From the IMG/VR virus record IMGVR_UViG_3300027816_000052, positions 1-64,000 of that record: DNA of 64,000 nt; one strand, written 5' to 3'. Below are positions 36,718 to 57,708 of the stretch, one piece after another. Position numbers and translations under genes: made by a program. Position 1 is the first letter of the stretch. Each line of letters begins with the position of its first letter. A model generated the notes under the pieces. The model searched no databases and was not told the DNA's origin. It saw only the letters and a list, made by a program, of their open reading frames with translations.

Positions 36718-36789
36718 TATCCCCCGAAGGATTCGAACCCTCACCAACTGAGTCGAAATCAGGTATGCTATCCATTACACTAGAGGGAC
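36718..36789 (-). tRNA. tRNA-Arg(UCG)
   Basis: GTCCCTC/GGGGGAT; CCTGA-TTTCGAC-TCAG; GAGGG-TTCGAAT-CCTTC. Confidence 0.85.
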
Positions 36790-37049
36790 TTTTTCTCTTT
36801 TCTTTTTTTCCATTCTACAGCAAGTGCTGCTCCAATAAAAGCGCCTAACATTGCAGCACCAAATAAACGTGTATCATTTACATAATTTACAGTGGTGAAA
36901 GCACCAAATAAAACAATTAATGCTGACCATATTCCGGATGCGATAGTTTTTCTTTCCTCCACTTTAATAAAATATAAAGTCCATGCAATATCAGCTAAAA
37001 TCATGGAAAACATAACCAGCAAAAATTTTAATTCAAAGGGTATATTCAT
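36780..37049 (-). CDS. Small three-TM membrane protein
   Basis: Three hydrophobic helices. Confidence 0.65.
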   Translation of the reverse strand: MNIPFELKFLLVMFSMILADIAWTLYFIKVEERKTIASGIWSALIVLFGAFTTVNYVNDTRLFGAAMLGAFIGAALAVEWKKRKEKKSL

Positions 37050-37492
37050 CTTTTTAATAATTTATCACATTTATTTTTCCAATTTGATGAGAGACATGAA
37101 ATTGGTGTTACTTTTGTAAGTTGATTAATTAATCTAATTTCTTGTGGATTATCATCCAAATGAAATACAAAATCATTTCCATTCTTTTTAAACCACCAAG
37201 CCTTTGGGTCGTGGTTTGTAAAAATCACTCGTTCCCTTGGGATTCCTAAATCTTTCGCCACCAAAAACAAATCTTCTTCATTTGACCACCAAAGAACATC
37301 ATCGTCTCTTTTAAAAGTTTCATCATCAGGATATTTCTTTCTGAAAAATTCTTTTGGATTTTCCGGTCTTGAGGTAACAATCCATACCTCAATGTTGGAA
37401 TCTTCAATTAATTCCTTACAATAATTTTGTATGAACAGCGAATGACCAAGACAATCATCAAAATCAAAACTTACTTTTTTCATGCTAACCAA
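37046..37492 (-). CDS. HAD-superfamily phosphatase/nucleotidase-like protein
   Basis: VSFDFDDCL, VWIVTSR and HLDDN motifs. Confidence 0.75.
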   Translation of the reverse strand: MVSMKKVSFDFDDCLGHSLFIQNYCKELIEDSNIEVWIVTSRPENPKEFFRKKYPDDETFKRDDDVLWWSNEEDLFLVAKDLGIPRERVIFTNHDPKAWWFKKNGNDFVFHLDDNPQEIRLINQLTKVTPISCLSSNWKNKCDKLLKR

Positions 37493-37782
37493 CGAATTAA
37501 ATATTTTGCTTGCATTTGAGATGTAAAATCAGCCTCACCCATATCTGTAACAGGAATTTCAAAACTTATCACTTCAGTATCCTCACCACCATCTCCCAAA
37601 AATAATGAATAATAAGCAACACCGAGTCTGATTTTATCAAAAAACGCTATTGGATTGTTTTTATATAGCATTTTTTTAATTTCGTTTTTTCTTATTGTAT
37701 TTAATTTTTTATCCATTTTATCTAAAGTTATTTTATCAACGCTATCCATTGCTTCTTTATATAATTCTTCGTCTGTCTTCAT
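37480..37782 (-). CDS. Hypothetical protein
   Basis: 100-aa ORF. Confidence 0.6.
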   Translation of the reverse strand: MKTDEELYKEAMDSVDKITLDKMDKKLNTIRKNEIKKMLYKNNPIAFFDKIRLGVAYYSLFLGDGGEDTEVISFEIPVTDMGEADFTSQMQAKYLIRWLA

Positions 37783-39296: not shown

Positions 39297-39462
39297 TTTT
39301 TATAAAAAATTAAGAGTTTAAACCACCACTTCCACCACATGAATTTTAATGTTAAAAGACCTTCTGGGTCATGGTAGTATATGATTGTTGGAATTAAAGG
39401 TTTATGGTCCTCGATAATAAATCGCTTTGACCTATCTGTTCTAATTTTCATGTTTGTTAATT

Positions 39463-39735
39463 TTATCGTTTACAATAATTCCATATTTCTTCCGCTGTAT
39501 TCCATTCCGAACCAACGTTTAACATACCGATTGGGTCTTCTTTAAACCACATTCGTTCTTTCCATTCACCAGTACCATTTAATCTAAAATAACTTATAAT
39601 TGAGAGTGAGATATTACTTGGTTCTAGTTCATTTGGGTCATTTGCGGAATTACCAATCCAATGGTCGATAAATCCATCTTTACAATAAATTCGTCGAAAT
39701 TTAACCCACCCTTCTTGTAGTTTTTCGGTTTTCAT
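39463..39735 (-). CDS. Hypothetical protein
   Basis: 90-aa ORF. Confidence 0.55.
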   Translation of the reverse strand: MKTEKLQEGWVKFRRIYCKDGFIDHWIGNSANDPNELEPSNISLSIISYFRLNGTGEWKERMWFKEDPIGMLNVGSEWNTAEEIWNYCKR

Positions 39736-39989
39736 ATAATTTCTAATGATATTAAACTCATAAATCTATCATGTGAGTCTAAAGAATAATAAATTCTAAC
39801 TTTTTGACCTTGTTCACTTATTAATTCTTTAAAATGTTTATGAATTAAAATTTTAACATCTTTATTTATCACCATAAATAAATGATTTTCTTTAAAATCA
39901 AGTTCAGATGGAATTTCTGTGTAATAAACATTTTTAATAATCAACTCAATAAAAGGGAATTTGTTTGTGTATGATGTTTCAATATTCAT
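39732..39989 (-). CDS. Hypothetical protein
   Basis: 85-aa ORF. Confidence 0.55.
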   Translation of the reverse strand: MNIETSYTNKFPFIELIIKNVYYTEIPSELDFKENHLFMVINKDVKILIHKHFKELISEQGQKVRIYYSLDSHDRFMSLISLEII

Positions 39990-40005
39990 TATTATTAATT
40001 TTTAG

Positions 40006-40079
40006 TTGTCCCACTCTGACTCGAACAGAGAACCTCCACATTATCAGTGTGACGATCTAACCAATTGATCTATGAGACA
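40006..40079 (-). tRNA. tRNA-Ile(GAU)
   Basis: TGTCTCA/TGGGACA; TCACA-CTGATAA-TGTGG. Confidence 0.92.
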
Positions 40080-40321
40080 ATAAGTGGTTATTTTATCGCT
40101 TTTATCCCTTGATCAGAGGGGAAGTGCTCGTAAAATAACCAAAACCAAACTTCAAATATCATTATATGTTCTATATAAAATTCGACAAAAGATAAACCCT
40201 AAAAAGCAACAAATCAAATTTATAATGGTAACATCATAAGATTGGGGATATAATATTTGTGTATATACACCAGCTAGGAATAAGGTAATGTAAGATAATA
40301 CTTTAAGTACGTGTTTCATTT

Positions 40322-40570
40322 TTATATAAAATAAGGTCCGTAGATAACACCCCCTGACTCAACAACACCCTTTTCCATTTCCCAAGCTTTTTTTAATGCT
40401 TCTTTAAGGGTATATACAGGACTAGCACCATTACCCCTAATTAACATGTGTGCGTGTTTGAAAACTCTTTTCTTTGAGATTTCTTTGGGAAAAATGATTA
40501 AGCTATTATCGCTATTTTTTTGATTTAAATAACGAGTTAACATTCCTTTTTTTGGTTCCATATCATTCAT
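40322..40570 (-). CDS. Hypothetical protein
   Basis: 82 aa; VFKHAH...EALKKAWEMEK motif. Confidence 0.6.
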   Translation of the reverse strand: MNDMEPKKGMLTRYLNQKNSDNSLIIFPKEISKKRVFKHAHMLIRGNGASPVYTLKEALKKAWEMEKGVVESGGVIYGPYFI

Positions 40571-40717
40571 TGTTTTTTTCTTTATCTTTAATTTCTTCTA
40601 TACGTCTGATGGTTGAGGGTTTAGTACATCTTCCACCGTAACCACAAAGATACGAAAGATTTCTGGTTTTTCTACGCACAATTTTACCTTGTTTACTCAT
40701 TTTGATTTTTTTATATG

Positions 40718-40789
40718 CGGTCTATGACGGGTTCGATCCGTCTACTCTACCGTGACAGGGTAGGATGATAGCCATTTCACCAATAGACC
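40718..40789 (-). tRNA. tRNA-Asp(GUC)
   Basis: GGTCTAT/ATAGACC; CTACC-CTGTCAC-GGTAG; T-loop ATCGAAC. Confidence 0.88.
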
Positions 40790-40800
40790 AAAAGAAATTG

Positions 40801-40872
40801 AGGACTCGGAGAATTACGATATCTCGACCTAAAAGTTAACAGCTTTTTGCTCTGCCCCTGAGCTACGAGTCC
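40801..40872 (-). tRNA. tRNA-Asn(GUU)
   Basis: GGACTCG/CGAGTCC; AAAAG-CTGTTAA-CTTTT; atypical T-arm. Confidence 0.82.
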
Positions 40873-40878
40873 TTATTG

Positions 40879-40951
40879 TGGTACTTCGTGGTTCCGAGCC
40901 ACGCTCCTCCCGTCTTCAGCGGGATGCTTTCACCAGATTAGCTTAAGTACC
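40879..40951 (-). tRNA. tRNA-Phe(GAA)
   Basis: GGTACTT/AAGTACC; TCCCG-CTGAAGA-CGGGA; T-loop CTCGGAA. Confidence 0.85.
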
Positions 40952-41006
40952 GTTATCAGTTACAAAACCTCTCAAATTAGGAACTTCACCGATGTAGTTT
41001 TTTTAG

Positions 41007-41090
41007 TGGAAGTAGTAAGACTCGAACTTACGAACCCCTTTCGGAGAAGTGATTTACAGTCACTTGGAATTGCCGCTATCCGATACTTCC
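41007..41090 (-). tRNA. tRNA-Tyr(GUA)
   Basis: GGAAGTA/TACTTCC; AGTGA-CTGTAAA-TCACT; long variable arm. Confidence 0.92.
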
Positions 41091-41094
41091 ATTT

Positions 41095-41158
41095 GCTGTC
41101 TCTCCATGCTGTCAATGCGGATGTTTTATCATGAATTTAGGTACCTCGCATTGCTCCC
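41095..41158 (-). ncRNA. Small RNA with TGACAG-N3-GGAGAGAC motif (copy 1)
   Basis: CAATGCG/CGCATTG stem followed by a motif shared with 42034..42103. Confidence 0.55.
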
Positions 41159-41164
41159 ATATTG

Positions 41165-41236
41165 TAGTCCCGACGAGAATCGAACTCGCATTACCGGAGT
41201 GAAAATCCGGGTTCCGAACCATTAGAAGACGGGACC
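41165..41236 (-). tRNA. tRNA-Glu(UUC)
   Basis: GGTCCCG/CGGGACT; CCGGA-TTTTCAC-TCCGG. Confidence 0.9.
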
Positions 41237-41260
41237 ATTTAAAATTTTAATGAACTAAAG

Positions 41261-41334
41261 CTGTCCCGGAAGGGGTCGAACCTTCAAACTTCCCCTTCAA
41301 AGGGGGATGACTTTGCCAATTTGTCTACAGGACA
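41261..41334 (-). tRNA. tRNA-Gln(UUG)
   Basis: TGTCCTG/CGGGACA; TCCCC-CTTTGAA-GGGGA; G73. Confidence 0.9.
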
Positions 41335-41339
41335 ATAAG

Positions 41340-41473
41340 CGGGGGAGGTTGGATTCGCACCAACAATCGTTACATTTCAGAGTAATTGCTTTACTGTTTC
41401 GAAGTATCTCATATTCTCACCACTCGGACGAGGGAAAATGAAATGAGTTTTTCTTTTTATTAGCTTCTCCCCC
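41340..41473 (-). ncRNA. tRNA-like RNA with large D-loop insertion and 8-nt anticodon loop
   Basis: GGGGGAG/CTCCCCC, GCT/AGC D-stem, TTAC/GTAA, GTTGG-TGCGAAT-CCAAC. Confidence 0.7.
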
Positions 41474-41485
41474 AAGAAATTATAG

Positions 41486-41568
41486 TGGATGTTGACGGAA
41501 TCGAACCGCGTTTCCAAACAGCACCCCCAACCTCATCATGAACGGTCGGTCAAGGTTTAGCAACACCC
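41486..41568 (-). ncRNA. tmRNA-TLD-like / Ala-acceptor tRNA-like RNA (83 nt)
   Basis: GGGTGTTG/CAACATCC with G3:U70, A73, T-loop TTCGATT, no D-stem. Confidence 0.7.
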
Positions 41569-41579
41569 AAAAAAGTTAG

Positions 41580-41653
41580 TTCTCCCAGCGAGACTCGAAC
41601 TCACAACTCCCATATTAAAAGTATGGTACTCTAACCAATTGAGTTACAGGAGA
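41580..41653 (-). tRNA. tRNA-Lys(UUU)
   Basis: TCTCCTG/TGGGAGA; CCATA-CTTTTAA-TATGG. Confidence 0.9.
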
Positions 41654-41658
41654 TTATG

Positions 41659-41792
41659 TGATGAGTGATGGATTCGAACCACCATAAGCTGCTTCGTTTA
41701 GGATATCCTCTAAGCAACAGCGGGATATGTATAGTGTTGGGTAACTATATCACTAATATCCACCGCAACCCGTTCCCTTGGGCTATCTCATC
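41659..41792 (-). ncRNA. tRNA-like RNA with extended anticodon and variable arms
   Basis: GATGAG/CTCATC, GCCC/GGGT D-stem, GGTGG-TTCGAAT-CCATC T-arm, no canonical anticodon loop. Confidence 0.7.
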
Positions 41793-41797
41793 AAATT

Positions 41798-41942
41798 GAG
41801 AGGACACCGATACCTCCTCTCTGGGTGGGTCTAATTTCGAATTCTTTTATGACTTGTTCTGAAAGTCGCCAACATACTCATCATTTCTGATTTAGTCATT
41901 GCACGTCCCACTTAACTTTAAACGCGGTCGGTTTTAAGGTAT
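41798..41942 (-). ncRNA. Candidate structured RNA downstream of tRNA-Pro
   Basis: GTGGG/CCCAC, GACTT/AAGTC, GAGAGGA/TCCTCTC, ATACCT/AGGTAT. Confidence 0.45.
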
Positions 41943-41950
41943 GTATTGTG

Positions 41951-42026
41951 TCGAGGTGAGAGGATTTGAACCTCCATGATATCTTCGCCCCAAACGAAGA
42001 GACTTAGCCAATTAGTCCACACCTCG
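41951..42026 (-). tRNA. tRNA-Pro(UGG)
   Basis: CGAGGTG/CACCTCG; CTTCG-TTTGGGG-CGAAG. Confidence 0.9.
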
Positions 42027-42819: not shown

Positions 42820-42878
42820 ATTTTATTTGAACATAATGAGGTTCTGTGTTAAAGTAAACTATTCATATATTTATGGTT

Positions 42879-43697
42879 ATGAAAAAGATTAAATTAACAG
42901 AATCGGATTTATATAGAATTGTTAGAAAGGTTCTTCTTGAGCAAGATGAAAAAAAGAAAAGTTTTACATTTTCTCCGGGTTCATTTGAATCTCTTATAAC
43001 ATCATCATCAGGTGAAAGATTTGTTAAACATCTTAATAACAAATATGATAGGGTTATTGTTAATGAAGAGTTGGATTTAAGTGAAACACCAATTCAATCC
43101 TTGCCGGATAATCTTCATGTTGAGGGAAATTTGGATTTAGAAGGAACGCAAATTCAATCCTTACCGGATAATCTTCATGTTGGGGGGAATTTGTTTTTAT
43201 ATGGATGCAAAAATCTTAAATCCTTACCGGATAATCTTTATGTTGGGGGAAATTTGGAGTTAGATGGAATACCAATTCAATACTTAGGGAATAATATTCA
43301 TGTTAAGGGAAATTTGGAGTTAGATGGAATACCAATTCAATCCTTACCGGATAATCTTCATGTTGGGGGAGATTTGAGTTTAGTAGGAACACCAATTCAA
43401 TCCTTACCGGATAATCTTCATGTTGGGGGATATTTGGATTTATATGGAACACCAATTCAATCCTTACCGGATAATCTTCATGTTGGGGGAAGTTTGTATT
43501 TAAGAGGAACACCAATTCAATCCTTACCGGATAATCTTCATGTTGAGGGAGATTTGTTTTTAGGTAAAACACCAATTCAATCCTTACCGAATAATCTTGA
43601 CGTTAAGGGGACAATTTATATTAAAGGAACACCATTAAATGATAATGATGAATTGGTTAAGAAATATGAAGAAAAATATAGAATTATTAGAGTTTAA
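42879..43697 (+). CDS. LRR-like repeat protein with MKKIKLTESDL leader
   Basis: About nine tandem 20/21-aa repeats; start re-called because ATATTTAT overlaps the ATG at 42873. Confidence 0.88.
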   Translation: MKKIKLTESDLYRIVRKVLLEQDEKKKSFTFSPGSFESLITSSSGERFVKHLNNKYDRVIVNEELDLSETPIQSLPDNLHVEGNLDLEGTQIQSLPDNLHVGGNLFLYGCKNLKSLPDNLYVGGNLELDGIPIQYLGNNIHVKGNLELDGIPIQSLPDNLHVGGDLSLVGTPIQSLPDNLHVGGYLDLYGTPIQSLPDNLHVGGSLYLRGTPIQSLPDNLHVEGDLFLGKTPIQSLPNNLDVKGTIYIKGTPLNDNDELVKKYEEKYRIIRV

Positions 43698-43724: not shown

Positions 43725-44033
43725 ATGGGAATATTTGAACTAGTTAATACATTATTTGTATTATCATCGTTAGTTGTCGTTGCTTCAGAATATGCAAGCA
43801 AATATACAAAAGTTAAAGGAACGTTATCACAAATCCAATCTTGGGTAATTTCAATCCTAATTGGTATTTTTTGTGCATGGTTAAACTTTGGAGTATTCAA
43901 TGGTGTGGACACCAAAGGGGGCATTCTCTATGGAATATTAATCGGATTAATATCAAATGGAATATTTGACATGTCATTCGTTAAACAAATCTTAACAATG
44001 ATTGGTGCTAGAGCAAATACTTTAAAGGATTAA
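43725..44033 (+). CDS. Three-TM holin-like membrane protein
   Basis: Three TM helices, GLISNGIFD motif, basic tail; convergent with a lysin candidate. Confidence 0.55.
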   Translation: MGIFELVNTLFVLSSLVVVASEYASKYTKVKGTLSQIQSWVISILIGIFCAWLNFGVFNGVDTKGGILYGILIGLISNGIFDMSFVKQILTMIGARANTLKD

Positions 44034-44638
44034 ACGATATCTTTACTTTCAATTAAGGTGTAGGTAAATCTATTACCGTGGATATTTCTTGCTTTATTTA
44101 AAATTGTCATAAATTCATTAAAGTCTTTGACTCTTTTAAATACAGAACATCCTTCGCTCCAATCGTTTACAAATTGTGATTCAGTTTTTGGATTTGAACG
44201 ATGTATATTAATACCAAAAACACCCTCATGAATTGTTGCGGGGTCCATATCAAATTTCATATCTTTATTTTTATCACGATAAACTTTAACAGGTCTGTCT
44301 TGACATAAAGCATCATATTTTCCTTGGTGCTTTCTTATAATATATGCACTTCTATATTGACCCGGAACAAGAATTGCAACACCCCTTGTATTACTAAATT
44401 CTCTCACAGCTTTTGTTCCCGGATCTGTGGTAATATCCCACTCATGATATTTCCACACACCATTTTCTTTATATGTTAATGTTAATTTATCATCAAAAAC
44501 ATTTGTAACTCTTGAACCCGGTCCTGAGTTTCTAATGCTAACAACGTTAACATCAAATCCTTTATTTGAATCATCATTAAACCAAACATAACCTTTTGAT
44601 TTAAGAGCGTTTTCTATTTTTTCTTTTGAGTATAACAT
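44030..44638 (-). CDS. L,D-transpeptidase (YkuD)-like cysteine enzyme, putative lysin
   Basis: GINIHR...NDWSEGC catalytic His/Cys motif. Confidence 0.7.
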   Translation of the reverse strand: MLYSKEKIENALKSKGYVWFNDDSNKGFDVNVVSIRNSGPGSRVTNVFDDKLTLTYKENGVWKYHEWDITTDPGTKAVREFSNTRGVAILVPGQYRSAYIIRKHQGKYDALCQDRPVKVYRDKNKDMKFDMDPATIHEGVFGINIHRSNPKTESQFVNDWSEGCSVFKRVKDFNEFMTILNKARNIHGNRFTYTLIESKDIV

Positions 44639-44713: not shown

Positions 44714-44956
44714 ATGTCAATATTAAAAGAAGAAATCAAAGGAACGAAGATTTATAATGAAATTCAATCTTCAAATATTGTGAGAACAGAATATGATACA
44801 CAAACTGAAATTATGATAGTTGAATTTAAAAATGGTTCTAGGTTTGAGTATGAAAAAGTACCCCATAAAATATATTCTCAATTTAGATTAGCTGAATCGC
44901 AGGGAAAGTTCTTTTCATCCTCAATATCAAAAGCATATAAGTATAAAAAAATTTAA
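44714..44956 (+). CDS. KTSC-domain protein
   Basis: SSNIVRTEYD...VEFKNG..YEY..VP...AESQGKFF. Confidence 0.9.
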   Translation: MSILKEEIKGTKIYNEIQSSNIVRTEYDTQTEIMIVEFKNGSRFEYEKVPHKIYSQFRLAESQGKFFSSSISKAYKYKKI

Positions 44957-45012: not shown

Positions 45013-47004
45013 ATGAGTGAAGAATCGAAAATAATTTCATCGTTTTCATTACAAGAAACATTAAATCCGAAAATTTGGGATAATTATAAAAATCCTGAAA
45101 AAGCTTCGCTTAAACCAGAAATAAGAAAGAAACTTCTTGAGATTGCTCATGAGTTTATGGATTTTATTGATATTGAGTTTTTTGTTGATGATATTATTTT
45201 TACCGGTTCTCTTTCAAATTTTAATTGGTCAGATTTTTCTGACGTTGATTTACATCTTGAAGTTGATTTTACCCAGTTTGATACTGATTCAGTTGAGTTA
45301 TATCGTGAACTGTTTAATTTAAAAAAACTCTTATTTAATACCAATCATGATATTACCATAAAGGGGTTTGAGGTTGAGCTTTATGTTCAAGATATTATTG
45401 AACCCCACACAAGTGGTGGGATTTATTCGGTTCTTTTTGATGAATGGACGGTTGTACCACAAAAAAAAGATGTTAAAATAGATAGGAATCTTTTAAAGAA
45501 AAAAATTAAAACGTGGACCAATAAAATTGATGAAATTACCGAACAAGTTAAAAATGGTGATTATGACGAATCAATTTTATTAATTAAAGAATTAAGAGAT
45601 AAGATTAAAAAATATAGAAAAGCTGGTCTTGAAAAGAATGGTGAATTTTCATATGAGAATTTGGTATTCAAATACTTAAGAAGGGGTAAATATATTGAAA
45701 GATTAATAGACTTATCCAATCAATTAAAAGATAAAAAGCTGTCTTTAGAATCGTTAAATGAAGCTAAATTAATTGGTGGTGATTTTAAATGGGGTGGTGG
45801 ACCAAAAGAACACGGTAAAAGAGCATTCGGTAATTGGCAATCTGATAACGCTTATGATTTAATGGCTCCGGTAGGTACGCCCGTTTATTCATTAACTGAT
45901 GGGACAATCACAAAAACATATTTCACTGAAGGAGGTGAAAGTGGAAAACAAACTAAAATCTATGGTTGGCAAGTAACTATAAAAGGTGATGATAATAATT
46001 TTTTTTATACCCATTTAGGTGAAATAAATCCAAACATAAAGGTTGGTAATAGAATTTCTAAAGGTGATTTAATTGGTACAATTGGCGCACCTACAAGTGG
46101 TAGAAAATGGTATCCACATTTACACATTGCGGTTCAAAATGGTGATTTAAAATCATACATAAATGATACGGCAATTATAAAAAAAGAAGAAAGTATTTTT
46201 GATAAGATTTTAAAGTTTTTAGGTCTTGAAGGATTAATAACATCAGAAGAAACAAATTTTGTTAAAGAGTTAGAAAGTTTAATACAGTCAAATACTGAGT
46301 TAAAATGGGAAAAAAATAAAAAGATAGAATATAATGATAATACTAAAACACTGCAAAGCATTCTACAATTATTAGGATATTCTTTACCCAAATGGGGTGT
46401 TGATGGAAAGTTTGGTCCTGAAACAAATACGGCTGTTATTAATTTCCAAAAAGAAAATAATTTAACACCAAATGGTGTTGTTGATAACATCACACTTAAA
46501 GTAATTCTTAAAGAATTATCAAAAATTGATTTGAATCAAGATAAAATTAGTGGAATTCAAAAAAATAAAGAAAATCTAAAAATAAACCCAACAAGTAATA
46601 AAAATAAAATTTTAAAGTTTTTAACCGATAAGGGATTAACAATAGAACAAGCATCTGGAGTAGCTGGTAATTTACAAGCAGAATCTAATTTTAATCCGAG
46701 TGCTGTTGGCGATAATGGAACATCTTTAGGTATTGCTCAATGGCATAAAAGTAGAAAAGATAATTTAATTAATTTTTGTAATTCAAAAAAACAAAATTCA
46801 GAATCACTTGATTGTCAATTAGATTTCTTGTGGAGTGAGTTAAATACAAAATATTCAAATGTTTTATCCTCTATTAAGGCAAGTAACTCTGCTGGTGATG
46901 TAGCTGAAATTTTTGCATCAAAATACGAAAAACCAAGTAGTACAGATTATAGTAAAAGAATAAATTTTGCAGAAAAAATATATAGTGATACAACAATTTC
47001 TTAA
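45013..47004 (+). CDS. Nucleotidyltransferase + M23 peptidase + PG-binding + tail-lysozyme fusion
   Basis: FTGSLSNFNWSDFSDVDLHL; YDLMAPVGTPV...YTHL...HLHI; LQLLGY...VDGKFGPET; AGNLQAESNFNP...GIAQW. Confidence 0.8.
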   Translation: MSEESKIISSFSLQETLNPKIWDNYKNPEKASLKPEIRKKLLEIAHEFMDFIDIEFFVDDIIFTGSLSNFNWSDFSDVDLHLEVDFTQFDTDSVELYRELFNLKKLLFNTNHDITIKGFEVELYVQDIIEPHTSGGIYSVLFDEWTVVPQKKDVKIDRNLLKKKIKTWTNKIDEITEQVKNGDYDESILLIKELRDKIKKYRKAGLEKNGEFSYENLVFKYLRRGKYIERLIDLSNQLKDKKLSLESLNEAKLIGGDFKWGGGPKEHGKRAFGNWQSDNAYDLMAPVGTPVYSLTDGTITKTYFTEGGESGKQTKIYGWQVTIKGDDNNFFYTHLGEINPNIKVGNRISKGDLIGTIGAPTSGRKWYPHLHIAVQNGDLKSYINDTAIIKKEESIFDKILKFLGLEGLITSEETNFVKELESLIQSNTELKWEKNKKIEYNDNTKTLQSILQLLGYSLPKWGVDGKFGPETNTAVINFQKENNLTPNGVVDNITLKVILKELSKIDLNQDKISGIQKNKENLKINPTSNKNKILKFLTDKGLTIEQASGVAGNLQAESNFNPSAVGDNGTSLGIAQWHKSRKDNLINFCNSKKQNSESLDCQLDFLWSELNTKYSNVLSSIKASNSAGDVAEIFASKYEKPSSTDYSKRINFAEKIYSDTTIS

Positions 47005-47046: not shown

Positions 47047-47220
47047 ATGCCAGAAACAGTATCAGCGGGAACTTATAACTATGTAATACAAGATTGCGCT
47101 TGTACGGGTAATACTCAGTTTTATTCACCACATCCTGAATATGTTAACCCAAAGAATGGTGATACCGTTGTTCAAATCTCTTCCATTGAGCTTGGTGGGT
47201 TCAATGGATTAAATAATTAA
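47047..47220 (+). CDS. Small hypothetical protein (57 aa, not in ORF track)
   Basis: My translation MPETVSAGTYNY...PHPEY...IELGGFNGLNN; ATATTTAT upstream. Confidence 0.65.
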   Translation: MPETVSAGTYNYVIQDCACTGNTQFYSPHPEYVNPKNGDTVVQISSIELGGFNGLNN

Positions 47221-47232: not shown

Positions 47233-48420
47233 ATGGGAACATTAAAACCAGTAGGTAGTGAAAAATTACAGGGGGCGGATAAAATCGCTCGTATTATGGA
47301 AATTGCCAGATATAAAGAAGCTTTACCTAATCAAGAAAAAAATTTACAAACAGAATCATTTTCAGTTCAGTTAGCTGATGGTAATACCTATAGAATTTTA
47401 TACGAGAAGAACGGCTATATTATTCAGAAATCTGTAAATGAATCATTTGATTATATTGAACCGATGAAGAATAGAAAATATTATTCATCATATTCTGACG
47501 CATTTAAAAGAGTAAATTTGATTGCTAAGGAATTAAATACTTTGTATGAAAATAAAGACGGTGTTTCATTATTTGGTGAACAAAAAAAGTTCGTTTTAAA
47601 GGCTCCAACACCTCCCGCACCAGAAATGGCTCCCGAAATTAGTGCTCCAGCACCTAATTCCGGAATACCAGAAACACCTGCGGTTGATGATATTTCTTTA
47701 GATATTGAAACACCTTCTACTGATTTAGCGGAACCAATGACCGGTGAAGTTCCTTCAGAAACAGGTGAAGTATCGTTTAAACAAATACAAAAATTAACCG
47801 GAAAACTTGCTCAAAAATTAAGAGAATTTAAAGTTTCTGGTGAAATGTCATCAAAAGATATAAAATACGTTGTTAATTCAATATTATCTGCTTTGGATTT
47901 AACATCGCTTGAGGAGGAAGATAAAGAAGAAATTTTATCAAGATTTGATAGTGAAGATATGGATATTGACATAGAAACTGACATGAGTGCTGAAGCTGGT
48001 CTTGAAACACCGGAAGAGGAAATTCCTATGGGTGAAGGTTGGGATGTTGAGGAATCATATGAGGAGGTTGAGGAGGAAGAATCACCTGAAAATAAATTCA
48101 CAAAAGATATTATGGATTCAATTTTTTCAGAATCAAAAGTTGAATCTACATTAACAAAGTATTTTGAAAAAACAAAATCAGAAATTTTAAGTGAACAGAA
48201 AAAATATAATCAATTTAAGGAAAGTTTAAAAACTAAAATTAAACAAGAATTAAGTGAAATTAAAAAATTAGCTGAGAATACTAATCAAGAAAAAAATGCT
48301 AAAACTTTCTTACGTGAGAACCCTACTTTTAACTTTGTTGGAAAAACTAATAAGAAAAGTTTAGTGTTTGAAAATAAAGGCGAACAAATAAGAATCACAA
48401 AGGAAGGTAATGTATTATGA
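47233..48420 (+). CDS. Hypothetical acidic/Pro-rich late protein
   Basis: 395 aa in the late operon upstream of terminase. Confidence 0.7.
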   Translation: MGTLKPVGSEKLQGADKIARIMEIARYKEALPNQEKNLQTESFSVQLADGNTYRILYEKNGYIIQKSVNESFDYIEPMKNRKYYSSYSDAFKRVNLIAKELNTLYENKDGVSLFGEQKKFVLKAPTPPAPEMAPEISAPAPNSGIPETPAVDDISLDIETPSTDLAEPMTGEVPSETGEVSFKQIQKLTGKLAQKLREFKVSGEMSSKDIKYVVNSILSALDLTSLEEEDKEEILSRFDSEDMDIDIETDMSAEAGLETPEEEIPMGEGWDVEESYEEVEEEESPENKFTKDIMDSIFSESKVESTLTKYFEKTKSEILSEQKKYNQFKESLKTKIKQELSEIKKLAENTNQEKNAKTFLRENPTFNFVGKTNKKSLVFENKGEQIRITKEGNVL

Positions 48421-48818
48421 GTCATCTAGTATATGTGAACGGGTTAGGACCAAATTATAAAGGTGAACATATATATGAATTTATTTTTTCAGAATCTGAT
48501 GAAATTAGTGGTGATTATTGGGACGCAAAACCATCGCATGGTCAACCAAAACCTCCAGATTTGGAGTATGTAAAAAAAGTTGGTATACTTAGAAATAGTG
48601 GTGTTATTTTTGACTTAATACAGAACTCTGACGTTTTTGGAATGGAAGACGCTGTAGATGGTATTATAGCATTAGCTTGGGAAAACGACGAAACTAAAAC
48701 TAATTTTAAAAAATTGGTATTCTTATTTGGTGAAGAAGAAAAAATTATAAAAGATAAACTATATTCAAGAGATTTAATTCTTGAATTTGAAAAAGAAATG
48801 AGTTATGAAATCGATTAA
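48417..48818 (+). CDS. Hypothetical protein
   Basis: 133 aa, overlapping operon gene. Confidence 0.7.
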   Translation: MSHLVYVNGLGPNYKGEHIYEFIFSESDEISGDYWDAKPSHGQPKPPDLEYVKKVGILRNSGVIFDLIQNSDVFGMEDAVDGIIALAWENDETKTNFKKLVFLFGEEEKIIKDKLYSRDLILEFEKEMSYEID

Positions 48819-49503
48819 AGAAAAATACAACGAATTAATTCAAAAAGGTTTTTCCAAAAAAACCCTTTATTCTTTAAATGAGACTGAACTTTCAGATCTT
48901 CATAAGCTAATTACTGAACAAGTAAAACAAACAACTAAACAAGTTACAACCACAACAATTCCCTCGTCTGTTGCAAAATCAACCGGTGCTAATGTTGGTA
49001 ATGTCGATATAAAACAGGACGCTTCCGGAAATATTGTTGCAACAAAAATGGAGGGTGAAATGAAAGAAGGTGGAAAGAAAAAAGTAAATCCTTGGGCGGT
49101 TTGTACTTCAAATATGGGTAAAAAGTTTGGTACAACTGAAAGAAGTGAGTGGAATAAAGAACAAATGGATGAATATGAGCGTTGTATTATGGATGTTAAA
49201 AAATCCGCAAAAAAATATAAGAAAAAAATTGATGAAGAATTGGAAAAACAACTTGTAAAGTTAGTTGAAAAGCATATCTCACCAAGAATGACTAAGGGTG
49301 ATTTACTTAATTTAATTGAGCAAGGAACAAAAGAAGCGCCAACAAAACCTAAAGAAAAGGAAAAGGAGCGTACAAAACCTTGGCATCCCGGAAGAGATCC
49401 CCGTCCCGGTGTTGAACCAGCACCGAAAGCTAAAAAATCGGATGAGAAGAAAAAAGAGGATATTATGAAAATAATTGCAAAAATATTAAACAATAATGAG
49501 TAA
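48805..49503 (+). CDS. Hypothetical protein
   Basis: 232 aa; NPWAVC...YERCI motif. Confidence 0.7.
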   Translation: MKSIKEKYNELIQKGFSKKTLYSLNETELSDLHKLITEQVKQTTKQVTTTTIPSSVAKSTGANVGNVDIKQDASGNIVATKMEGEMKEGGKKKVNPWAVCTSNMGKKFGTTERSEWNKEQMDEYERCIMDVKKSAKKYKKKIDEELEKQLVKLVEKHISPRMTKGDLLNLIEQGTKEAPTKPKEKEKERTKPWHPGRDPRPGVEPAPKAKKSDEKKKEDIMKIIAKILNNNE

Positions 49504-50740
49504 AAAATTTAAATTATCTGAAGCTCCGGTTGATTATGGTGATTATCCGGAAAGAATGGACCCAGAAACTGAAAGAAAAGTTTCAAGTCCCGAAAATCCA
49601 TTTGCAAAAGCATTAAGAGGTGGTGTTTCTGATGTTGAAAAATTAATCGGTTCTCGATTTAAAAAAGTCGTTGATAAACTCAAAGCTGCGACTGGAATTG
49701 AGGATTTGAGCAATCATGAGGTTACTAGTAGCTTGGTCAAAGATTTGTTTAATAATATAAATAGCGTTGTTCAAATTGAATCGAGATATAAAGAAGAGTT
49801 AACAGAATTAGCGATTAAATTAGCGATAGACGCTGCTGATGCTGAAGAAGATTGGTATGAGATTGAGGCTCGTCTTAATCCGATTGGGATTGATACTTCA
49901 AAGTTTAGATTGAAAAAAGAAGCGCCGCCCAAATTTCAACCCTCAACTTCATTTGAAATGGATACTTTAACAGATGAGGAAAAATTTGAATTAGAAAAGG
50001 CAAAAAGAAATATAATTAATGCTATTGTACAAGGCTCATCAAAAAAAGGACATTATATTTTTCAATTACCAGAAGTTAAAGAAAAGTTAGATGAAATTAA
50101 TCCTTCGTTATATGATTTTTACTCTAAAATAATGGCGGTTAATGATATTATGTATTTTACTATGGATAAGCTTATTGAAGCTGCGAGTAAAACTGGTCGG
50201 GGTGTTGCTGGTAAAGTACAAACAATGAGTAATGATGATGAAGACGATGAAAATGCACCAGACATAAAAATTGTTGCTGAAGGATTAATGTTTCCGATAT
50301 TAGTTCATGAAATAATAAAAGGTATTGAGGAAGCAAAAGCTAAATATGGTTTACCCGAAGACCCTGAAATGGCGATGAAAGTTATGGGTCAAACAGATGT
50401 TCTTTCTCAGGAACCCATGCAATTAAGAATTGGACCTGAATTAGTGGAGAAAATAAAGTTTGCGTTACCCGCAGAAATTTTTGAACCCGAAAATAAAGGT
50501 TTAATTAGCTTTTTCCAAACTGAACTTTATTCTTTACCAGCTAAAGAATTCTTAGATGTTATTAGTGATATTGTTTCTGAAAATGATGCTGAGAATAGAA
50601 ACGGAATAAAAAAATTCAATGATTTATTGAAAATTGCAAAAAACAAAAAAAACCAATACGACAAATCAAAAAAATCAACTGATTCGGGTGATGATGAGGA
50701 TGAGGAATTTGGTTCATTTTTAAAGGACTTAGGTTTATAA
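49496..50740 (+). CDS. Hypothetical protein
   Basis: 414 aa immediately upstream of terminase. Confidence 0.7.
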   Translation: MSKKFKLSEAPVDYGDYPERMDPETERKVSSPENPFAKALRGGVSDVEKLIGSRFKKVVDKLKAATGIEDLSNHEVTSSLVKDLFNNINSVVQIESRYKEELTELAIKLAIDAADAEEDWYEIEARLNPIGIDTSKFRLKKEAPPKFQPSTSFEMDTLTDEEKFELEKAKRNIINAIVQGSSKKGHYIFQLPEVKEKLDEINPSLYDFYSKIMAVNDIMYFTMDKLIEAASKTGRGVAGKVQTMSNDDEDDENAPDIKIVAEGLMFPILVHEIIKGIEEAKAKYGLPEDPEMAMKVMGQTDVLSQEPMQLRIGPELVEKIKFALPAEIFEPENKGLISFFQTELYSLPAKEFLDVISDIVSENDAENRNGIKKFNDLLKIAKNKKNQYDKSKKSTDSGDDEDEEFGSFLKDLGL

Positions 50741-50776
50741 AATCACTCTATTAGTTATTCTAATAGATAATATATA

Positions 50777-52546
50777 ATGCAAGGATTAACAAAAGAGCAA
50801 TTAGCGTTAGAGTATGTTAGGTGTTTAAAAAGCACACCATATGCACTTAAAACGTATTTACAAACATATGATAACACGGTACAAAAATATGTCCCTCTTG
50901 AGCTATTCAAAGACCAGCAACAACTAATCAACGATTATGATACGTTTGAAGAAAACATTGCGTTAAAATATCGTCAAGCTGGCGTATCAACAGCTACAGC
51001 GGGTTGGGCTTCAAAAATACTTGCTTTTGCGAAAAAAGAAAAACCTGAAAAAATTCTAATTATTGCAAACAAATTGGATACCGCCGTTGAGATGGCGAAT
51101 AAGATTAGAAGTTTTATTGACCAGTGGCCTAAATGGGTTGGTATTGAGTTTTCAGATGAAAAGAACGCTGCTAGACATTTTAAATTAAATAATGATAGTG
51201 AGGTTAAAGCTGTTGCCACTTCTAAAGATGCTCTTAGAGGTTATACACCAACAATTCTTATTTTTGATGAGGCAGCTTATATTGAAGCTGATGATGATTT
51301 CTGGGCTGCTTGTATGGCATCTCTTTCCACCGGTGGTAAAGTCATTGTAATATCAACACCAAACGGATTTGATCCAATTTATTATGAAATTTATGACCAA
51401 TCAATTCGTAATATGAATAACTTCAAAATTACAGAAATGTATTGGTATAGAGATCCCAGATATACAAAAGATTTATATCTAGTTAAAACAAATGATATCG
51501 TGGATTATCTTTTAAATAGAGAAGAAAGAAAAGATTTAGAAATTATTGATTTTTCACATATAAGTCCACATGAAAGAGATTTTAATATAATCAAGGATTA
51601 TATTGGTCAAGGGTTCAAACCATGCTCAACATGGTTTGAAAATATGGTTAAAAAATTAAAATATGATAGAAGAAAAGTTGCACAAGAACTAGATTGTCAG
51701 TTTTTAGGTTCAGGTGACAACGTTGTAGATTCAACAATTCTTGAAGATATTAGAGAAAATCAAGTTTGTGAGCCAAAATATAAAACAATGGGAGGTTCTT
51801 TATGGGTTTGGAAAGAACCCGAACTTGGTCATAAGTACGTTTGTGGCTTGGATGTCTCAAGAGGAGACAGTGATGATTTTTCAGCTTTTCAGATAATTGA
51901 TTTTGAAACCAGAGAACAAGTTGCGGAATATCTTGGTAAAGTACCACCAGATGTGATGGCGGAAATAGCGTATAAGTGGGGAACAACATATAACGCTTAT
52001 ATTGTTATTGATATTACCGGTGGTATGGGGGTTTCTACTGCTAGAAAATTACAAGAATTAAATTATAAAAATTTATATATCGATGGGCTTGAGCTTGGTA
52101 ATAAATGGAAATATGATGCAAAAGCACTTGATAAAATTCCCGGTATTAATTTCAATAATAAAAGAGTTCAGATTATTTCTTCATTTGAGGAGGCTTTAAG
52201 ACATAAATTTAAAGTTTATAGTAGTAGATTATTAAATGAGTTAAATTCATTTGTTTATATTAATGGTAGACCTGATCACCAAAAGGGTCGTCATGATGAT
52301 TTAATCATGTCAATTGCTATGGCAATTTATGTTTCCGAATTTTCTTTCACACAATTAGAAAAAGTTACGGAACATACGAAAGTTATGATTGAATCATGGC
52401 AAGTTAATACATATGAACCAAAACAAACTTCACAATTCTTTAATCCAAGCGTATCTTTTACTGATGATAAAAGTATATATAGAAATAACCCAACAAGAAA
52501 AGACTATGAACAACATTCTTGGTTATTTGGTGGGATAAGAAGGTAA
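50777..52546 (+). CDS. gp17: Terminase large subunit (T4 gp17-like)
   Basis: LKYRQAGVST Walker A, LIFDEAA Walker B, ISTPNG, GLDVSRG and HDDLIMS nuclease motifs. Confidence 0.93.
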   Translation: MQGLTKEQLALEYVRCLKSTPYALKTYLQTYDNTVQKYVPLELFKDQQQLINDYDTFEENIALKYRQAGVSTATAGWASKILAFAKKEKPEKILIIANKLDTAVEMANKIRSFIDQWPKWVGIEFSDEKNAARHFKLNNDSEVKAVATSKDALRGYTPTILIFDEAAYIEADDDFWAACMASLSTGGKVIVISTPNGFDPIYYEIYDQSIRNMNNFKITEMYWYRDPRYTKDLYLVKTNDIVDYLLNREERKDLEIIDFSHISPHERDFNIIKDYIGQGFKPCSTWFENMVKKLKYDRRKVAQELDCQFLGSGDNVVDSTILEDIRENQVCEPKYKTMGGSLWVWKEPELGHKYVCGLDVSRGDSDDFSAFQIIDFETREQVAEYLGKVPPDVMAEIAYKWGTTYNAYIVIDITGGMGVSTARKLQELNYKNLYIDGLELGNKWKYDAKALDKIPGINFNNKRVQIISSFEEALRHKFKVYSSRLLNELNSFVYINGRPDHQKGRHDDLIMSIAMAIYVSEFSFTQLEKVTEHTKVMIESWQVNTYEPKQTSQFFNPSVSFTDDKSIYRNNPTRKDYEQHSWLFGGIRR

Positions 52547-52558: not shown

Positions 52559-55500
52559 ATGGAAGATGAAAAACTAACAATATGGCAACGACTTTCTAAA
52601 GGATTTGGTCCAAACTCATTACTTGGACAAGAAAGTCCAACATTTAAATTTGATAAGAAGGTTTTATTAAAAACACCGAATAAGCAAGAGTACGAAAGAG
52701 AAAAACTCCAAGCACAACAAACAGCTTATTTAACATACCAATGGAGTAAGATTGAAAATAATTTATATACACAATCAGTATATTATGAACCCACTAGATT
52801 AGCATCATATTATGATTATGAGAGTATGGAATATTTTCCGGAAATTTCAGCAGCATTAGATACATTTTCGGAAGAATCTACAACGCCAAATCAAGATGGT
52901 CAAATGTTACAGATTTATTCTGAATCAAAAAGAATTAAATCAATTTTAACAGATTTATTCTATAATCAATTAGATATTAACACAAATCTACCCATGTGGA
53001 CAAGAAATACTTGTAAGTATGGTGATAATTTTGTGTTTTTAAAACTAGACCCAGAAAAAGGTATTGTTGGTTGTTTTCAACTACCAAATATTGAAATTGA
53101 ACGTATTGAAAAGGGGATGGTTAAACGTCCGGGTGGGACACCAAATAGCGACCCAGAAAATAAACAAATGAAATTCTCTTGGAAACAAAAAGATTTAGAT
53201 TTTAATACTTGGGAGGTCGCACATTTTAGATTATTGGGTGATGATAGAAAATTACCATACGGTACTTCGATGTTAGAAAAAGCGAGAAGAATTTGGAAAC
53301 AATTAGTTCTTGCTGAAGATGCAATGTTAATTTATAGAACATCTAGAGCACCGGAAAGAAGAGTATTTAAAGTTTTTGTTGGTAATATGGATGATAAAGA
53401 TGTTGAAGCATATGTGCAAAGATTTGCAAATAAATTTAAGCGAGACCAAGTAGCGGACCCAAAAACGGGTAATGTGGATTTACGTTTTAATCAAATGGCG
53501 GTAGACCAAGATTATTTTGTACCGGTTAGGGATATTGCTGCACCTAATCCGATTGATACATTACCGGGAGCGTGTATTGATTTAAATACCAGAATTCCCC
53601 TTCTTGATGGTAGAACTTTAACTTTACAACAAATAATTAATGAGTGGGATAATGGTAATAGAAACTTATGGGTTTATTCTTGTGACCCAAATACAGGGTC
53701 CGTACATCCGGGTATGGTAACTTGGGCTGGTGTAACAAGAAAAGACGCTGAAGTTATTAAAATTACATTAGACAATGGTGAAGAGGTGATTACAACTCCA
53801 GACCATAAATTTGTTCATAGAACTAGAGAATTTGTTGAAGCGAAAGATTTAATTGTTGGGGATAGTTTAATGCCTTTTTATTCAAGAACCGAAAAAATAA
53901 AGACCAACACTAATGATTATCACCAAATTTTTGATAATGAAAAAAATCAATGGGTTTTTACGCATAGAATGGTAAAAAACAGTACTGTTGGTAGTTCTTT
54001 AGTAAAAGAATGGGTTTTTAATTCTGAATTTAAAAATAAAGATAAAAAAATAATTCACCATAAAGACCATAATCGCTTTAATAATAATCCAAATAATTTA
54101 CTAATAATGAATGGTGAAGACCATTTAAAATATCACCAACATATCATAAAAGAAACGATTTGGAAAGATATTGAACTTAATAAGAAAAAAATTTCAGAAG
54201 GTATTAAAAATTATTTAAATAATCTTTCTTCAGATGAATTACAAAAAAGACATGAAAGAATTAATAATCCAATATCAAAAGCTAAAACAACTAAAAAGTT
54301 ATTGGAATGGAATAAAAATGATGAAAATTTAAAAAATAAAGGTAAAAAAATTTCAAAAGCTTATACAGAAGAAAGAAAAAATAAGATAAAGGAATTAAAT
54401 TTAATAAGGTGGTTGAATGATGATTATCGAAATAAAGTTTTTTCTAAAAAACAAACAATAACATTTGATGATTATATATATAATTCATTTGTTAGTGAAT
54501 TTAAAAAGACTTTACGTGCTGATTTAGCGTTAAAGAACTTAAATAATTCTTTTGAATTTATTTCACATTTTAAACAAATTAATGAGGAAATTAGAAGTTC
54601 GTTAACAAACTTAAATGAATTCACGCAAAACCATGTAGATAAAATGGTTAAACAACAAGGGTTTAAAAATTTTACTGAATGGAAACATTTTGAGTGTAAA
54701 AAGAGAGGATTTAAAAATATTCGTCAATGGAAATATAATGTTGAGAAAGAAATTTATTTTAACCATAAAATAACAAAAATTGAATGGTTAACAAATAAAA
54801 TTGACACTGGTACGATTACGGTTGATGGTAATGAATTATATTCAAAATCTCACACTTTTGCTATTGAAAGTGGTATTTTTATTAAAAATTCTAACCTTTC
54901 TGAAATTGCAGATATAGAATACATCCAGAAAAAACTTTTAACAGCATTAAGGATACCAAAAGCGTTCCTTGGGTTTGAAGAAGTTGTTGCTGATGGTAAA
55001 AATCTTGCGTTACAAGATATTCGTTTTGCTAGAACAATTAACAGAATACAAAAAAGTATGTTAGCGGAATTAAATAAAATTGCTATTATACATTTATTTA
55101 TTTTAGGTTTTGAAGATGAACTTTCTAACTTTACATTAGGATTAACAAACCCATCAACACAAGCTGATTTATTAAAGGTTGAGGTTTGGAAAGAGAAAAT
55201 CTTACTTTATAAAGACGCTGTTGCAGGAATTGAGGGTATTGCACCAACTTCACATTCTTGGGCTAAAAAACATATTCTTGGTTTCTCGGATGATGAAATT
55301 AAACTTGATATTCAACAACAAAGAATTGAAAAGGCGGTCGCAAAAGAACTTGAGAACACACCAAATGTGATTGTAAAAACAGGTATTTTTGATAGTGTTG
55401 ATGCAATCTACGGTCAAAAAGGTGGTGGTACTCAAGCTGGAACTCCCCCTCAAGAACCAACATCTGATATGACAATGCCTGAAACTAGTCCAGCATCATC

Positions 55501-56985: not shown

Positions 56986-57708
56986 ATGAAAATCTTAGGA
57001 CCAAACGAAATAGGACAAAGAGGTATTCTTATTGAAATGGATGCTGGTTATATTTCACCAAGTGATGAACGTAATTTAGCAATCATTAAAGAATCTAAAA
57101 ACTTATTGGATTATTCAAAACCATTTGAATTTTATGCTGTATTACAAAAATACGGAGTACCAAACAGAAATGGTAGAATTTATCCTGAAAGTATATTAAA
57201 AAGAGAATCTGAAAATTATTTAAAATTAATCAAACAAGGGAAAGCTATGAGTGAATTAAATCACCCAGAATCTTCCCTTATTGATTTGGATAGAGTTTCA
57301 CATCTTATTACAGATATGTGGTGGGACGGTCATATTTTAATGGGTAAATTAAAGTTATTAACATCACCCGGATTCCATGAAAGAGGTATTGTATCAACAA
57401 AAGCGGACATTGCTGCTAATTTGTTAAGACACGGTGCAACTTTGGGTATTTCCTCAAGAGGTGTTGGTTCATTGGTTAAAAAGGGTGAACAAAATGAGGT
57501 TCAATCAGATTTTGAATTAATTTGTTTTGATTTGGTATCATCACCTTCAACACCGGGTGCGTATCTCTTTAGTGATGTTAATGATAGAAACAAATTTGAA
57601 GAGAATATTGAGGAAGAGAAAAAATTGAGACAGCAGCCTATTTCAGATAAAAAAGAAATTAAGTCACTTGACTTAATGAAAAGATTATCCGATTATTTGG
57701 GAAAATAA
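56986..57708 (+). CDS. gp21: Prohead core protease (T4 gp21-like)
   Basis: NRNGRIYP, ELNHP, GISSRGVGS, FDLVSSPSTPGA. Confidence 0.93.
   Translation: MKILGPNEIGQRGILIEMDAGYISPSDERNLAIIKESKNLLDYSKPFEFYAVLQKYGVPNRNGRIYPESILKRESENYLKLIKQGKAMSELNHPESSLIDLDRVSHLITDMWWDGHILMGKLKLLTSPGFHERGIVSTKADIAANLLRHGATLGISSRGVGSLVKKGEQNEVQSDFELICFDLVSSPSTPGAYLFSDVNDRNKFEENIEEEKKLRQQPISDKKEIKSLDLMKRLSDYLGK

Follow-up and report, generated by a model that had tools for sequence, protein, structure and literature searches.

The DNA considered here comprises the first 64,000 nucleotides (hereafter the window) of the IMG/VR virus record IMGVR_UViG_3300027816_000052, which is linear and 256,029 bp long, with 30% G+C and a CheckV value of 85%. 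It contains a gene, designated P0001, whose product joins an N-terminal domain of nucleotidyltransferase (NTase) type, hereafter NT, to three modules directed at peptidoglycan: an M23-type metallopeptidase, a PG_binding_1 domain, and a PF18013 phage lysozyme domain. The positions of these modules and of the neighboring genes are listed in Table 1. The window encodes a T4-type terminase large subunit (TerL), a portal protein, and an S77 prohead protease, and a tail sheath gene is located at ~122 kb of the record, 75 kb from P0001, so the phage is taken to be a myovirus. Judged from its genes, it is a jumbo myovirus with only distant kin among cultured phages (TerL at most 30% identical).

Table 1. 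Features at and around P0001; positions are those of the window, and residue numbers are those of P0001 (aa, amino acids; ORF, open reading frame; TM, transmembrane).
Feature	Position	Strand	Evidence or remark
Holin-like gene, 102 aa, two hydrophobic helices, ~1 kb upstream of the fusion	43725..44033	+	phrog_1299 holin, 3e-6; TM scan
202-aa gene	44030..44638	-	phrog_3000, 1e-30; weak endolysin match phrog_33083, 6e-10; no Pfam, PDB or Atlas name
KTSC-domain gene, 80 aa, directly upstream of NT	44714..44956	+	PF13619, 3.6e-16
Whole gene P0001, 663 aa, four modules	45013..47004	+	Single ORF without stop or frameshift
NT domain, aa 1-243: Pol-beta-superfamily core (~aa 20-150) and four-helix bundle (154-243)	45013..45741	+	phrog_36119
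Catalytic motif span: G65-S66, D77-x-D79, H81, E122	45205..45378	+	Invariant in 141 homologues and 69 fused homologues
Junction, aa 244-257 (SLESLNEAKLIGGD), including L248-N249-E250/A251	45742..45783	+	pLDDT <50 in full-length model
M23-type metallopeptidase module, aa 258-384; D278-x3-D282, H334, H369-x-H371	45784..46164	+	PF01551
PG_binding_1 module, aa 442-497, after helical stretch 393-426	46336..46503	+	Pfam
PF18013 Phage_lysozyme2 module, aa 529-658; putative catalytic E557	46597..46986	+	Pfam
Downstream block: four genes (395, 133, 232, 414 aa), then TerL	47233..52546	+	Order kept in relatives
T4-type prohead protease (Peptidase_S77)	56986..57708	+	78.8 bits, over cut-off

A first-pass annotation of the window, made from the sequence alone, had allowed for the fusion being an assembly artefact. 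A fused gene 83% identical to P0001 occurs in independent ENA/JGI assemblies (relative L186) in the same gene order, that is, holin-like gene, 202-aa gene, KTSC gene, fusion, 57-aa ORF, four genes, TerL, and intein-bearing portal. In total, 742 homologues of similar length were found, and all 120 among the matches listed combine NT with lytic modules. The ratio of nonsynonymous to synonymous substitution rates (Ka/Ks), calculated by the Nei-Gojobori method between P0001 and the 83%-identical homologue, for which Ks is near saturation, was ~0.10 overall. NT was the most constrained module (0.045), followed by M23 (0.09), PG_binding_1 (0.10), and PF18013 (0.15), and the helical link gave 0.31. 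Values of 0.05-0.15 indicate that all four modules are under purifying selection, and such low ratios, together with the fused frame in independent assemblies, speak against an artefact. A nucleotide search with the P0001 gene gave zero matches in cultured phages, and the protein search detected the fusion in no cultured phage, its matches there being free-standing NT proteins or separate lysins.

In the full-length AlphaFold2 (AF2) model of P0001 (predicted local distance difference test score, pLDDT, 85.4; predicted TM-score, pTM, 0.40), four folded modules are held on flexible links with no fixed inter-domain packing. The disordered links are located at aa 244-257, 385-392, and 521-523.

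With regard to the N-terminal module, its first 250 aa have no direct match in Pfam, NCBIfam, PADLOC, or PDB sequences, and P0001 itself has no Pfam NTase match. The domain matches phrog_36119 (4e-40), a family of 247 positions with no annotated function, and searches of BFVD and the Atlas returned unnamed phage proteins only. Among 141 domain-only homologues, matches were obtained to PF01909 NTP_transf_2 (116 of 141, E <= 0.01), to MTPAP-like families (72 of 141), and to Polbeta (55 of 141). The domain satisfies the hG[GS] x9-13 Dh[DE]h motif and has the third carboxylate (E122), and twelve residues, G65, S66, S76, D77, D79, H81, E122, W145, R202, N216, K220, and R223, are invariant in the 141 homologues. 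The Pol-beta-type GS...DxD domain recognized in the first reading is thus present with its catalytic residues intact, and the possibility raised there that these residues might be inactive is countered by the invariance of G65, S66, D77, D79, and E122. All the motifs named in that reading were located as well, namely TGS (64-66), DVD (77-79), SLESLNEA (244-251), HLH (369-371), GNLQAES (552-558), and GIAQW (573-577).

The AF2 model of the isolated NT domain (pLDDT 96.2) consists of an NTase core and a four-helix bundle. Its Foldseek matches are all Pol-beta NTases, comprising AAD(9), CdnE, CdnD, AadA, ANT(6), LinB, MNT, TENT5, and the head of the archaeal CCA enzyme; the best of them, AAD(9) (6xz0), is weak (E 3.4e-4, TM-score 0.25, root-mean-square deviation ~15 A). 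Z-scores of the core were 6.8 for MNT (2rff/1ylq), 6.2-6.4 for FAM46, and 6.0-6.2 for AadA. A profile search of the PDB returned marginal matches only, to DrrA/SidM (E 0.018) and MNT, and a wide structure search mostly yielded generic helical bundles aligned to aa 154-250. In its GS...DxD...E core, helical domain, and length of ~250 aa, NT resembles the two-domain Pol-beta NTases (AAD(9)/AadA/LinB, MNT, TENT5/FAM46), but the similarity is at the level of the fold only, and NT has its own N- and C-terminal motifs and its own invariant H81, W145, R202, N216, K220, and R223. By sequence and model, NT is a nucleotidyltransferase of the Pol-beta superfamily with intact catalytic residues and looks active. 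At E <= 0.001, its family comprises 3,929 clusters at 50% identity among 1.84 billion representative proteins, and it is large, phage-restricted, and uncharacterized.

The three C-terminal modules, assigned in the first-pass annotation as an M23 peptidase, a peptidoglycan-binding domain, and a phage-tail-lysozyme domain, were borne out by Pfam, all above curated cut-offs: Peptidase_M23 at aa 279-377 (48.9 bits, cut-off 28.7), PG_binding_1 at aa 442-497 (50.6 bits, cut-off 23), and PF18013 at aa 529-658 (121.9 bits, cut-off 28.2; 2.9e-35). The M23 and PG_binding_1 domains of P0001 are the only ones of their kind in the 256-kb record. In the M23 module, the putative ligands H369-x-H371 and D282 and the putative catalytic His H334 are conserved in the alignment; at the position of the first zinc ligand (the His of HxxxD) stands Asp278, an Asp in 42 of 56 aligned rows throughout the clade, where canonical relatives have HxGVD. 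PG_binding_1 is the best-conserved of the C-terminal modules, with Q448, L451, G455, D464, G465, G468, and T471 invariant in the fused homologues. In the PF18013 module, 51 of 64 aligned rows retain E557 (within GNLQAES), for which a catalytic role is assumed, and the PHROG matches of this module are to tape-measure, tail, and endolysin families.

The relatives indicate which parts of this architecture are old and which were added. Counts for the nearest loci refer to the 80 closest ones in IMG/VR. The order KTSC -> NT -> d1 -> d2 -> d3 -> (d4) -> TerL is near-universal in them, and the KTSC gene is immediately 5' of NT in 71 of the 80, being absent from that place in Molly and the cyanophage loci. 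In 69 loci, NT is a free-standing protein of 240-260 aa; the NT ORF is longer in the remaining 11, of which seven have detected lytic modules, one is an NT-VanY fusion, and three (304-308 aa) are without a detected partner domain. Searches for exact protein matches agreed with these counts in outline. The lysin fusions group together as one clade in the NT-domain tree, and a free-standing member is nested within it. In a separate, distant NT group, an M23 domain lies upstream of a C-terminal NT (P0200 and P0222); the P0200 gene is followed directly by an Acb5 gene (PF26761; L013 12266-12661) among small early-type genes. The C-terminal modules vary among the fused homologues (M23, Amidase_2, GH19, VanY, glucosaminidase, and PF18013, with or without PG_binding_1), and relatives with a stand-alone NT have free-standing PG_binding_1+GH19 proteins (270-283 aa), in one case directly upstream of KTSC-NT.

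A check on how variable the fusion is in relatives, as the first reading had suggested, therefore returned a mostly free-standing NT and, among the fusions, swapped C-terminal modules. In ~20 relatives (e.g., L016, L023, L024, L028, L031, L036, and L047), a gene of 166-733 aa is inserted directly after NT, whose product is Cys-rich at its N-terminus, has long Thr-Pro repeats, and is conserved in a C-terminal block. The position directly after NT is thus a variable cargo site. By these comparisons, NT is a conserved core gene of this clade of marine jumbo myoviruses (order KTSC -> NT -> four genes -> TerL -> portal) and the lytic cassette an accreted, shuffle-prone C-terminal add-on, which in one sub-lineage has been fused in frame to the 3' end of NT and retained under purifying selection. 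Since 69 of the 80 nearest relatives have NT alone at the same locus, P0001 arose by accretion and not as a designed polyprotein, and the idea that it was purpose-built as one loses its footing.

Beyond the nearest loci, NT is always free-standing in cultured phages. Its occurrences comprise Maribacter phages Molly and Colly, Lak megaphages, huge uncultured phages, T4-like cyanophages, and Caulobacter phage Cr30. It adjoins a NUDIX gene in Molly and Colly and lies upstream of the DNA polymerase gene in T4-like cyanophages. In Cr30 (L104 2877-4212), the annotated endolysin gene gp179 shares 8 nt with the beginning of the gene for the NT homologue gp180; tRNA-Pro and tRNA-Met flank the two, and a small cytidylyltransferase-like gene is located just upstream. 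In 43 diverse loci outside the clade, the neighbors of NT are replication, nucleotide, and sugar-nucleotide genes, including 5'-3' exonuclease, NUDIX, DnaB, glycosyltransferases, CTP_transf_like, ThyA, and Zeta/AAA_33 kinase. Because the non-clade genes are located among those for replication and nucleotide metabolism, NT looks like a cytoplasmic enzyme, and its link to lysins looks largely clade-specific. An association with lysins as a family-wide trait of NT was considered and rejected, no peptidoglycan hydrolase being found among the top 25 Pfam families (81 neighbors, 43 loci). Other fusion partners of NT are ankyrin repeats, MORN repeats, GNAT, and a Zeta-type kinase, and the PHROG and Pfam scans of the long non-lysin partners were mostly blank. 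In one locus (L014 3172-3966), a P-loop kinase of Zeta_toxin/AAA_33 type is encoded directly upstream of an NT-containing protein of 1026 aa.

As for the substrate of NT, an RNA or tRNA 3' end is the leading guess, because of the adjacent gene of RNA-binding type and the similarity to TENT and MTPAP-like enzymes. The KTSC domain is regarded as an RNA-binding domain (PMC7824862). Another hint at RNA ends comes from a single family member fused to a class II CCA-adding enzyme, and hints at a small molecule or a protein come from the fold matches to ANT-like and CD-NTase-like enzymes and from the SidM/DrrA hits; none of these is decisive. KTSC and NT may form a new phage pair for the tailing or repair of RNA or tRNA 3' ends; the predicted KTSC-NT complex scored 0.02 (mark 0.32), which argues neither for nor against binding. 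The window has 22 tRNA genes in two clusters, 2182-4325 and 31031-42026, and, in agreement with the first reading, most of them (19-20 of 22) have no encoded CCA. The head of class II CCA-adding enzymes/poly(A) polymerases (PF01743) was found neither in P0001 nor in the 256-kb record. Together with the tRNA genes, this is a further hint at RNA 3' ends, though not a decisive one. No association of the kind described for RlaP, the RNA-ligase-associated NTase (PMC7824862), was seen for NT, and no RlaP-named Pfam match occurred among the 141 domains. Elsewhere in the record, ~180-200 kb from NT, RNA ligases of Rnl1 and Rnl2 type are encoded at 228531-229097 and 248085-248570 (+), and the two ligases point to an RNA-repair toolkit.

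With these results, we weakly and tentatively favor the view that P0001 is a late bifunctional protein in which a cytoplasmic NT is joined to an endolysin-type cassette acting at lysis, a view that falls somewhat short of being probable. P0001 would be made late and, without an export signal, would accumulate in the cytoplasm, where the NT module would use nucleoside triphosphates on its own substrate. At lysis, the inner membrane would open and the endolysin-type cassette, with its binding domain and two catalytic domains, would reach the wall. The two activities would be co-expressed and not mechanistically coupled, and cleavage of the linker would not be required. P0001 is, in this sense, better regarded as an unusual kind of lysin than as an established polyprotein of the phage head.

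The lysis role is favored for several reasons. First, the cassette has the plan of a modular endolysin, in which the C-terminal modules vary and PG_binding_1 is the best-conserved addition. Second, relatives with a stand-alone NT have a separate PG_binding_1+GH19 protein, and there is no second PG_binding_1 or M23 here. Third, neither a TM segment nor a signal is predicted in P0001, a two-TM holin-like gene precedes it by 1 kb, and the tail sheath gene is 75 kb away. Finally, the linkers are flexible with no fixed inter-domain packing, and NT is of cytoplasmic type outside the clade. Canonical endolysins stay in the cytoplasm and lack a signal peptide, and the TM scan likewise predicted neither a TM segment nor a signal in P0001, which weakens the remark in the first-pass annotation that a cytoplasmic modifier joined to wall hydrolases is functionally odd.

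The modular endolysins of Gram-negative jumbo phages (phiKZ gp144-type) combine PG_binding_1 with a catalytic domain and, like the phi29 gp13-type virion hydrolases, are among the closest comparisons; the free-standing PG_binding_1+GH19 proteins of clade relatives are of this type. P0001 resembles the former in its PG_binding_1 and muralytic domains, its lack of a signal peptide, and its swappable catalytic modules, but differs from them in having an N-terminal NTase of 243 aa, two lytic catalytic domains with the binding domain between them, and no conserved holin next to the gene.

Several observations weigh against a role in lysis. The holin-like gene occurs near the fusion in this phage and L186 only, and such a neighbor is not found near NT in the 80 IMG/VR loci. 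The genome has other lysis candidates, namely the 202-aa gene and an SLT protein preceded by a TM protein (225.7-226.6 kb). The latter two look like part of a second lysis-like cassette (record 225704-227534, -), in which a 103-aa protein with one TM segment is followed by a 184-aa SLT protein whose N-terminal hydrophobic segment is signal-anchor-like; a 195-aa gene of this cassette is a paralogue of the window gene 42873-43697, which itself precedes the holin-like gene. An NT-VanY fusion coexists with a separate PG_binding_1 protein in one relative, PF18013 is mostly a tail or tape-measure domain, and the literature, as far as searched, shows no endolysin with an unrelated cytoplasmic enzyme. 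The independent associations of NT with lysins (M23-NT in P0200/P0222 and the endolysin overlap in Cr30) hint at a functional coupling that the favored explanation does not need. TATAAATA, scanned in a late-promoter test, is enriched in the window (26 copies vs. 13.9 expected), but zero copies precede KTSC or NT; a sigma-70 scan gave results at chance level. A simple replacement of the PG_binding_1+GH19 endolysin of the clade by the fused cassette was considered and rejected, as one record has both.

It is unlikely, albeit a possibility to be taken seriously, that P0001 is instead a virion-borne "polyvalent" protein, whose cassette would open the wall locally and whose NT would enter the cell as a pre-made early effector; such an effector may serve in anti-defense or in RNA-end or protein modification. 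Polyvalent proteins join lysozyme or peptidase domains to effectors delivered with the DNA (PMC5512222), and P0001 is like them in having disparate activities, an NTase and three peptidoglycan modules, in one polypeptide. PF18013 and its PHROG matches indicate tape-measure and tail proteins, and the gene begins the late head/packaging block, whereas the T4-like NT homologues are located in early/middle regions. The other lysis candidates of the genome, the relative with a separate PG_binding_1 protein beside its NT-VanY fusion, and the lack of a gp5-type lysozyme (PF00959) in the record would fit a virion protein as well. Nevertheless, the phage is a myovirus whose sheath gene is 75 kb from P0001, NT is a compact enzyme without a structural or anchoring domain, and 69 of 80 relatives infect without an NT-borne hydrolase. 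Moreover, PG_binding_1 is generally known as typical of endolysins and not of virion hydrolases, and Pfam detected no processing peptidase domain. In line with the last point, P0001 is unlike the polyvalent proteins in having no processing metallopeptidase, and its virion delivery is putative; its gene is located in a late block but outside the tail module. According to the polyvalent survey (Iyer et al. 2017, PMC5512222), Pol-beta NTases were confined to proteins of conjugative elements, where they are fused to ArdC-N, and lysozyme was confined to those of phage type. In a wider form of this reading, likewise unlikely, the NT protein would be carried in the virions throughout this jumbo-phage clade and injected ready-made, with a wall-opening cassette of its own in the present lineage; it would then be the first polyvalent protein of phage type to have a Pol-beta nucleotidyltransferase as its base.

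Among virion proteins, the phi29 gp13-type hydrolases are like P0001 in combining a glycosidase with an M23 endopeptidase in one protein; unlike P0001, with its distance of 75 kb from the sheath gene, they are encoded in tail modules and have neither PG_binding_1 nor an NTase.

The first-pass annotation had gone further and proposed a head-packaged polyprotein cut after L-x-E by the S77 prohead protease, which would free an NTase effector and wall-penetrating enzymes; this we consider highly improbable. As that proposal anticipated, a T4-type Peptidase_S77 is encoded (Table 1). The rule for the T4 protease is (L/I)xE, the LNE/A of the junction fits it and lies within the predicted disordered 14-residue linker (aa 244-257), and [LIVM]xE is present within the junction in 69 of 69 fused homologues. 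On the other hand, the motif belongs to the tail of the NT family: a DKxLS[LIV]E-type tail terminates the NT domain family-wide, beyond its last helix (window 45730-45765), and it is kept in free-standing NT proteins, whose stop codon follows 0-6 residues later, so that some proteins end right there. At this tail, [ST][LIVM]xE occurs in 82 of 141 sequences, compared with ~2.5% expected. P0001 has nine [LI]xE sites, approximately the number predicted from composition. A T4-type capsid-targeting peptide is not evident, the N-terminus being folded (pLDDT >90 from residue 11) and LQE15 not conserved. In addition, from T4 biology, the head contents of contractile-tailed phages are thought to exit through the tail tube and not into the wall. 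Since the NT-family tail, including that of free-standing members, has the motif, what was read as a fusion junction is an end-of-domain motif, which came with the NT family and was not created by the fusion. Its later co-option is conceivable, but its presence is no sign of cleavage. The tail itself may make a tail contact or be a site of recognition or of processing.

Another reading, for which we see similarly little prospect, is that all four modules attack the wall, NT nucleotidylylating, within the cytoplasm, a peptidoglycan precursor or amino sugar and so blocking synthesis while the cassette degrades the wall, in the manner of ANT-type enzymes or of zeta toxins that phosphorylate UDP-GlcNAc. 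The top Foldseek matches are to NTases of antibiotics (amino sugars), namely AAD(9), AadA, ANT(6), and LinB, but they are weak (E 3e-4, TM-score 0.25, Z ~6) and do not exceed the matches to NTases of RNA or protein. A Zeta_toxin-type kinase is fused to one member of the family and encoded next to another; these are single cases, and such P-loop kinases include polynucleotide kinases. The recurrent associations with lysins would agree with a common target in the wall, yet most family members have early replication genes and no lysin around them, a setting in which a block of wall synthesis would be premature. Finally, an error of assembly or annotation has next to no chance, and neither has the decaying read-through of two genes, given the same fused ORF across independent assemblies of several sources, Ka/Ks of 0.05-0.15 in each module, and conserved catalytic residues.

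The significance of P0001 lies largely in NT, which defines a very large phage-only enzyme family with a perfectly conserved active site, ranging from jumbo marine phages and Lak megaphages to T4-like cyanophages and Caulobacter phage Cr30. In a widespread clade of marine jumbo phages, NT belongs to the core genes and adjoins those for packaging, and the lysin fusions provide a natural handle on where and when it acts: presence of the fused protein in virions would make NT an injected effector, and its absence from them would make the fusion an endolysin architecture of a new kind. The exchangeable modules (M23, amidase, VanY, GH19, and PF18013) also constitute a catalogue of lytic domains against marine Gram-negative hosts.

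Some other features of these loci were recorded. PDB sequence searches with the neighboring proteins of 202, 395, and 414 aa gave no matches. Family searches of the record for Gp5_OB and GH19 were blank, but they gave no signal in any control genome either, so that these blanks carry no weight. A Cys-containing ORF of 57 aa (47047-47220, +) is located between the fusion and the next gene and was called likewise in L186. An intein that includes an HNH endonuclease splits the T4-type portal gene (1046 aa; 52559-55699, +); L186 likewise has an intein-bearing portal, and more distant relatives have an uninterrupted portal of ~600 aa. In one clade relative (L004 20952-21143, -), ribosomal protein S21 is encoded within the head gene block, and in many relatives a ClpB-like AAA+ gene is located upstream of KTSC on the opposite strand.

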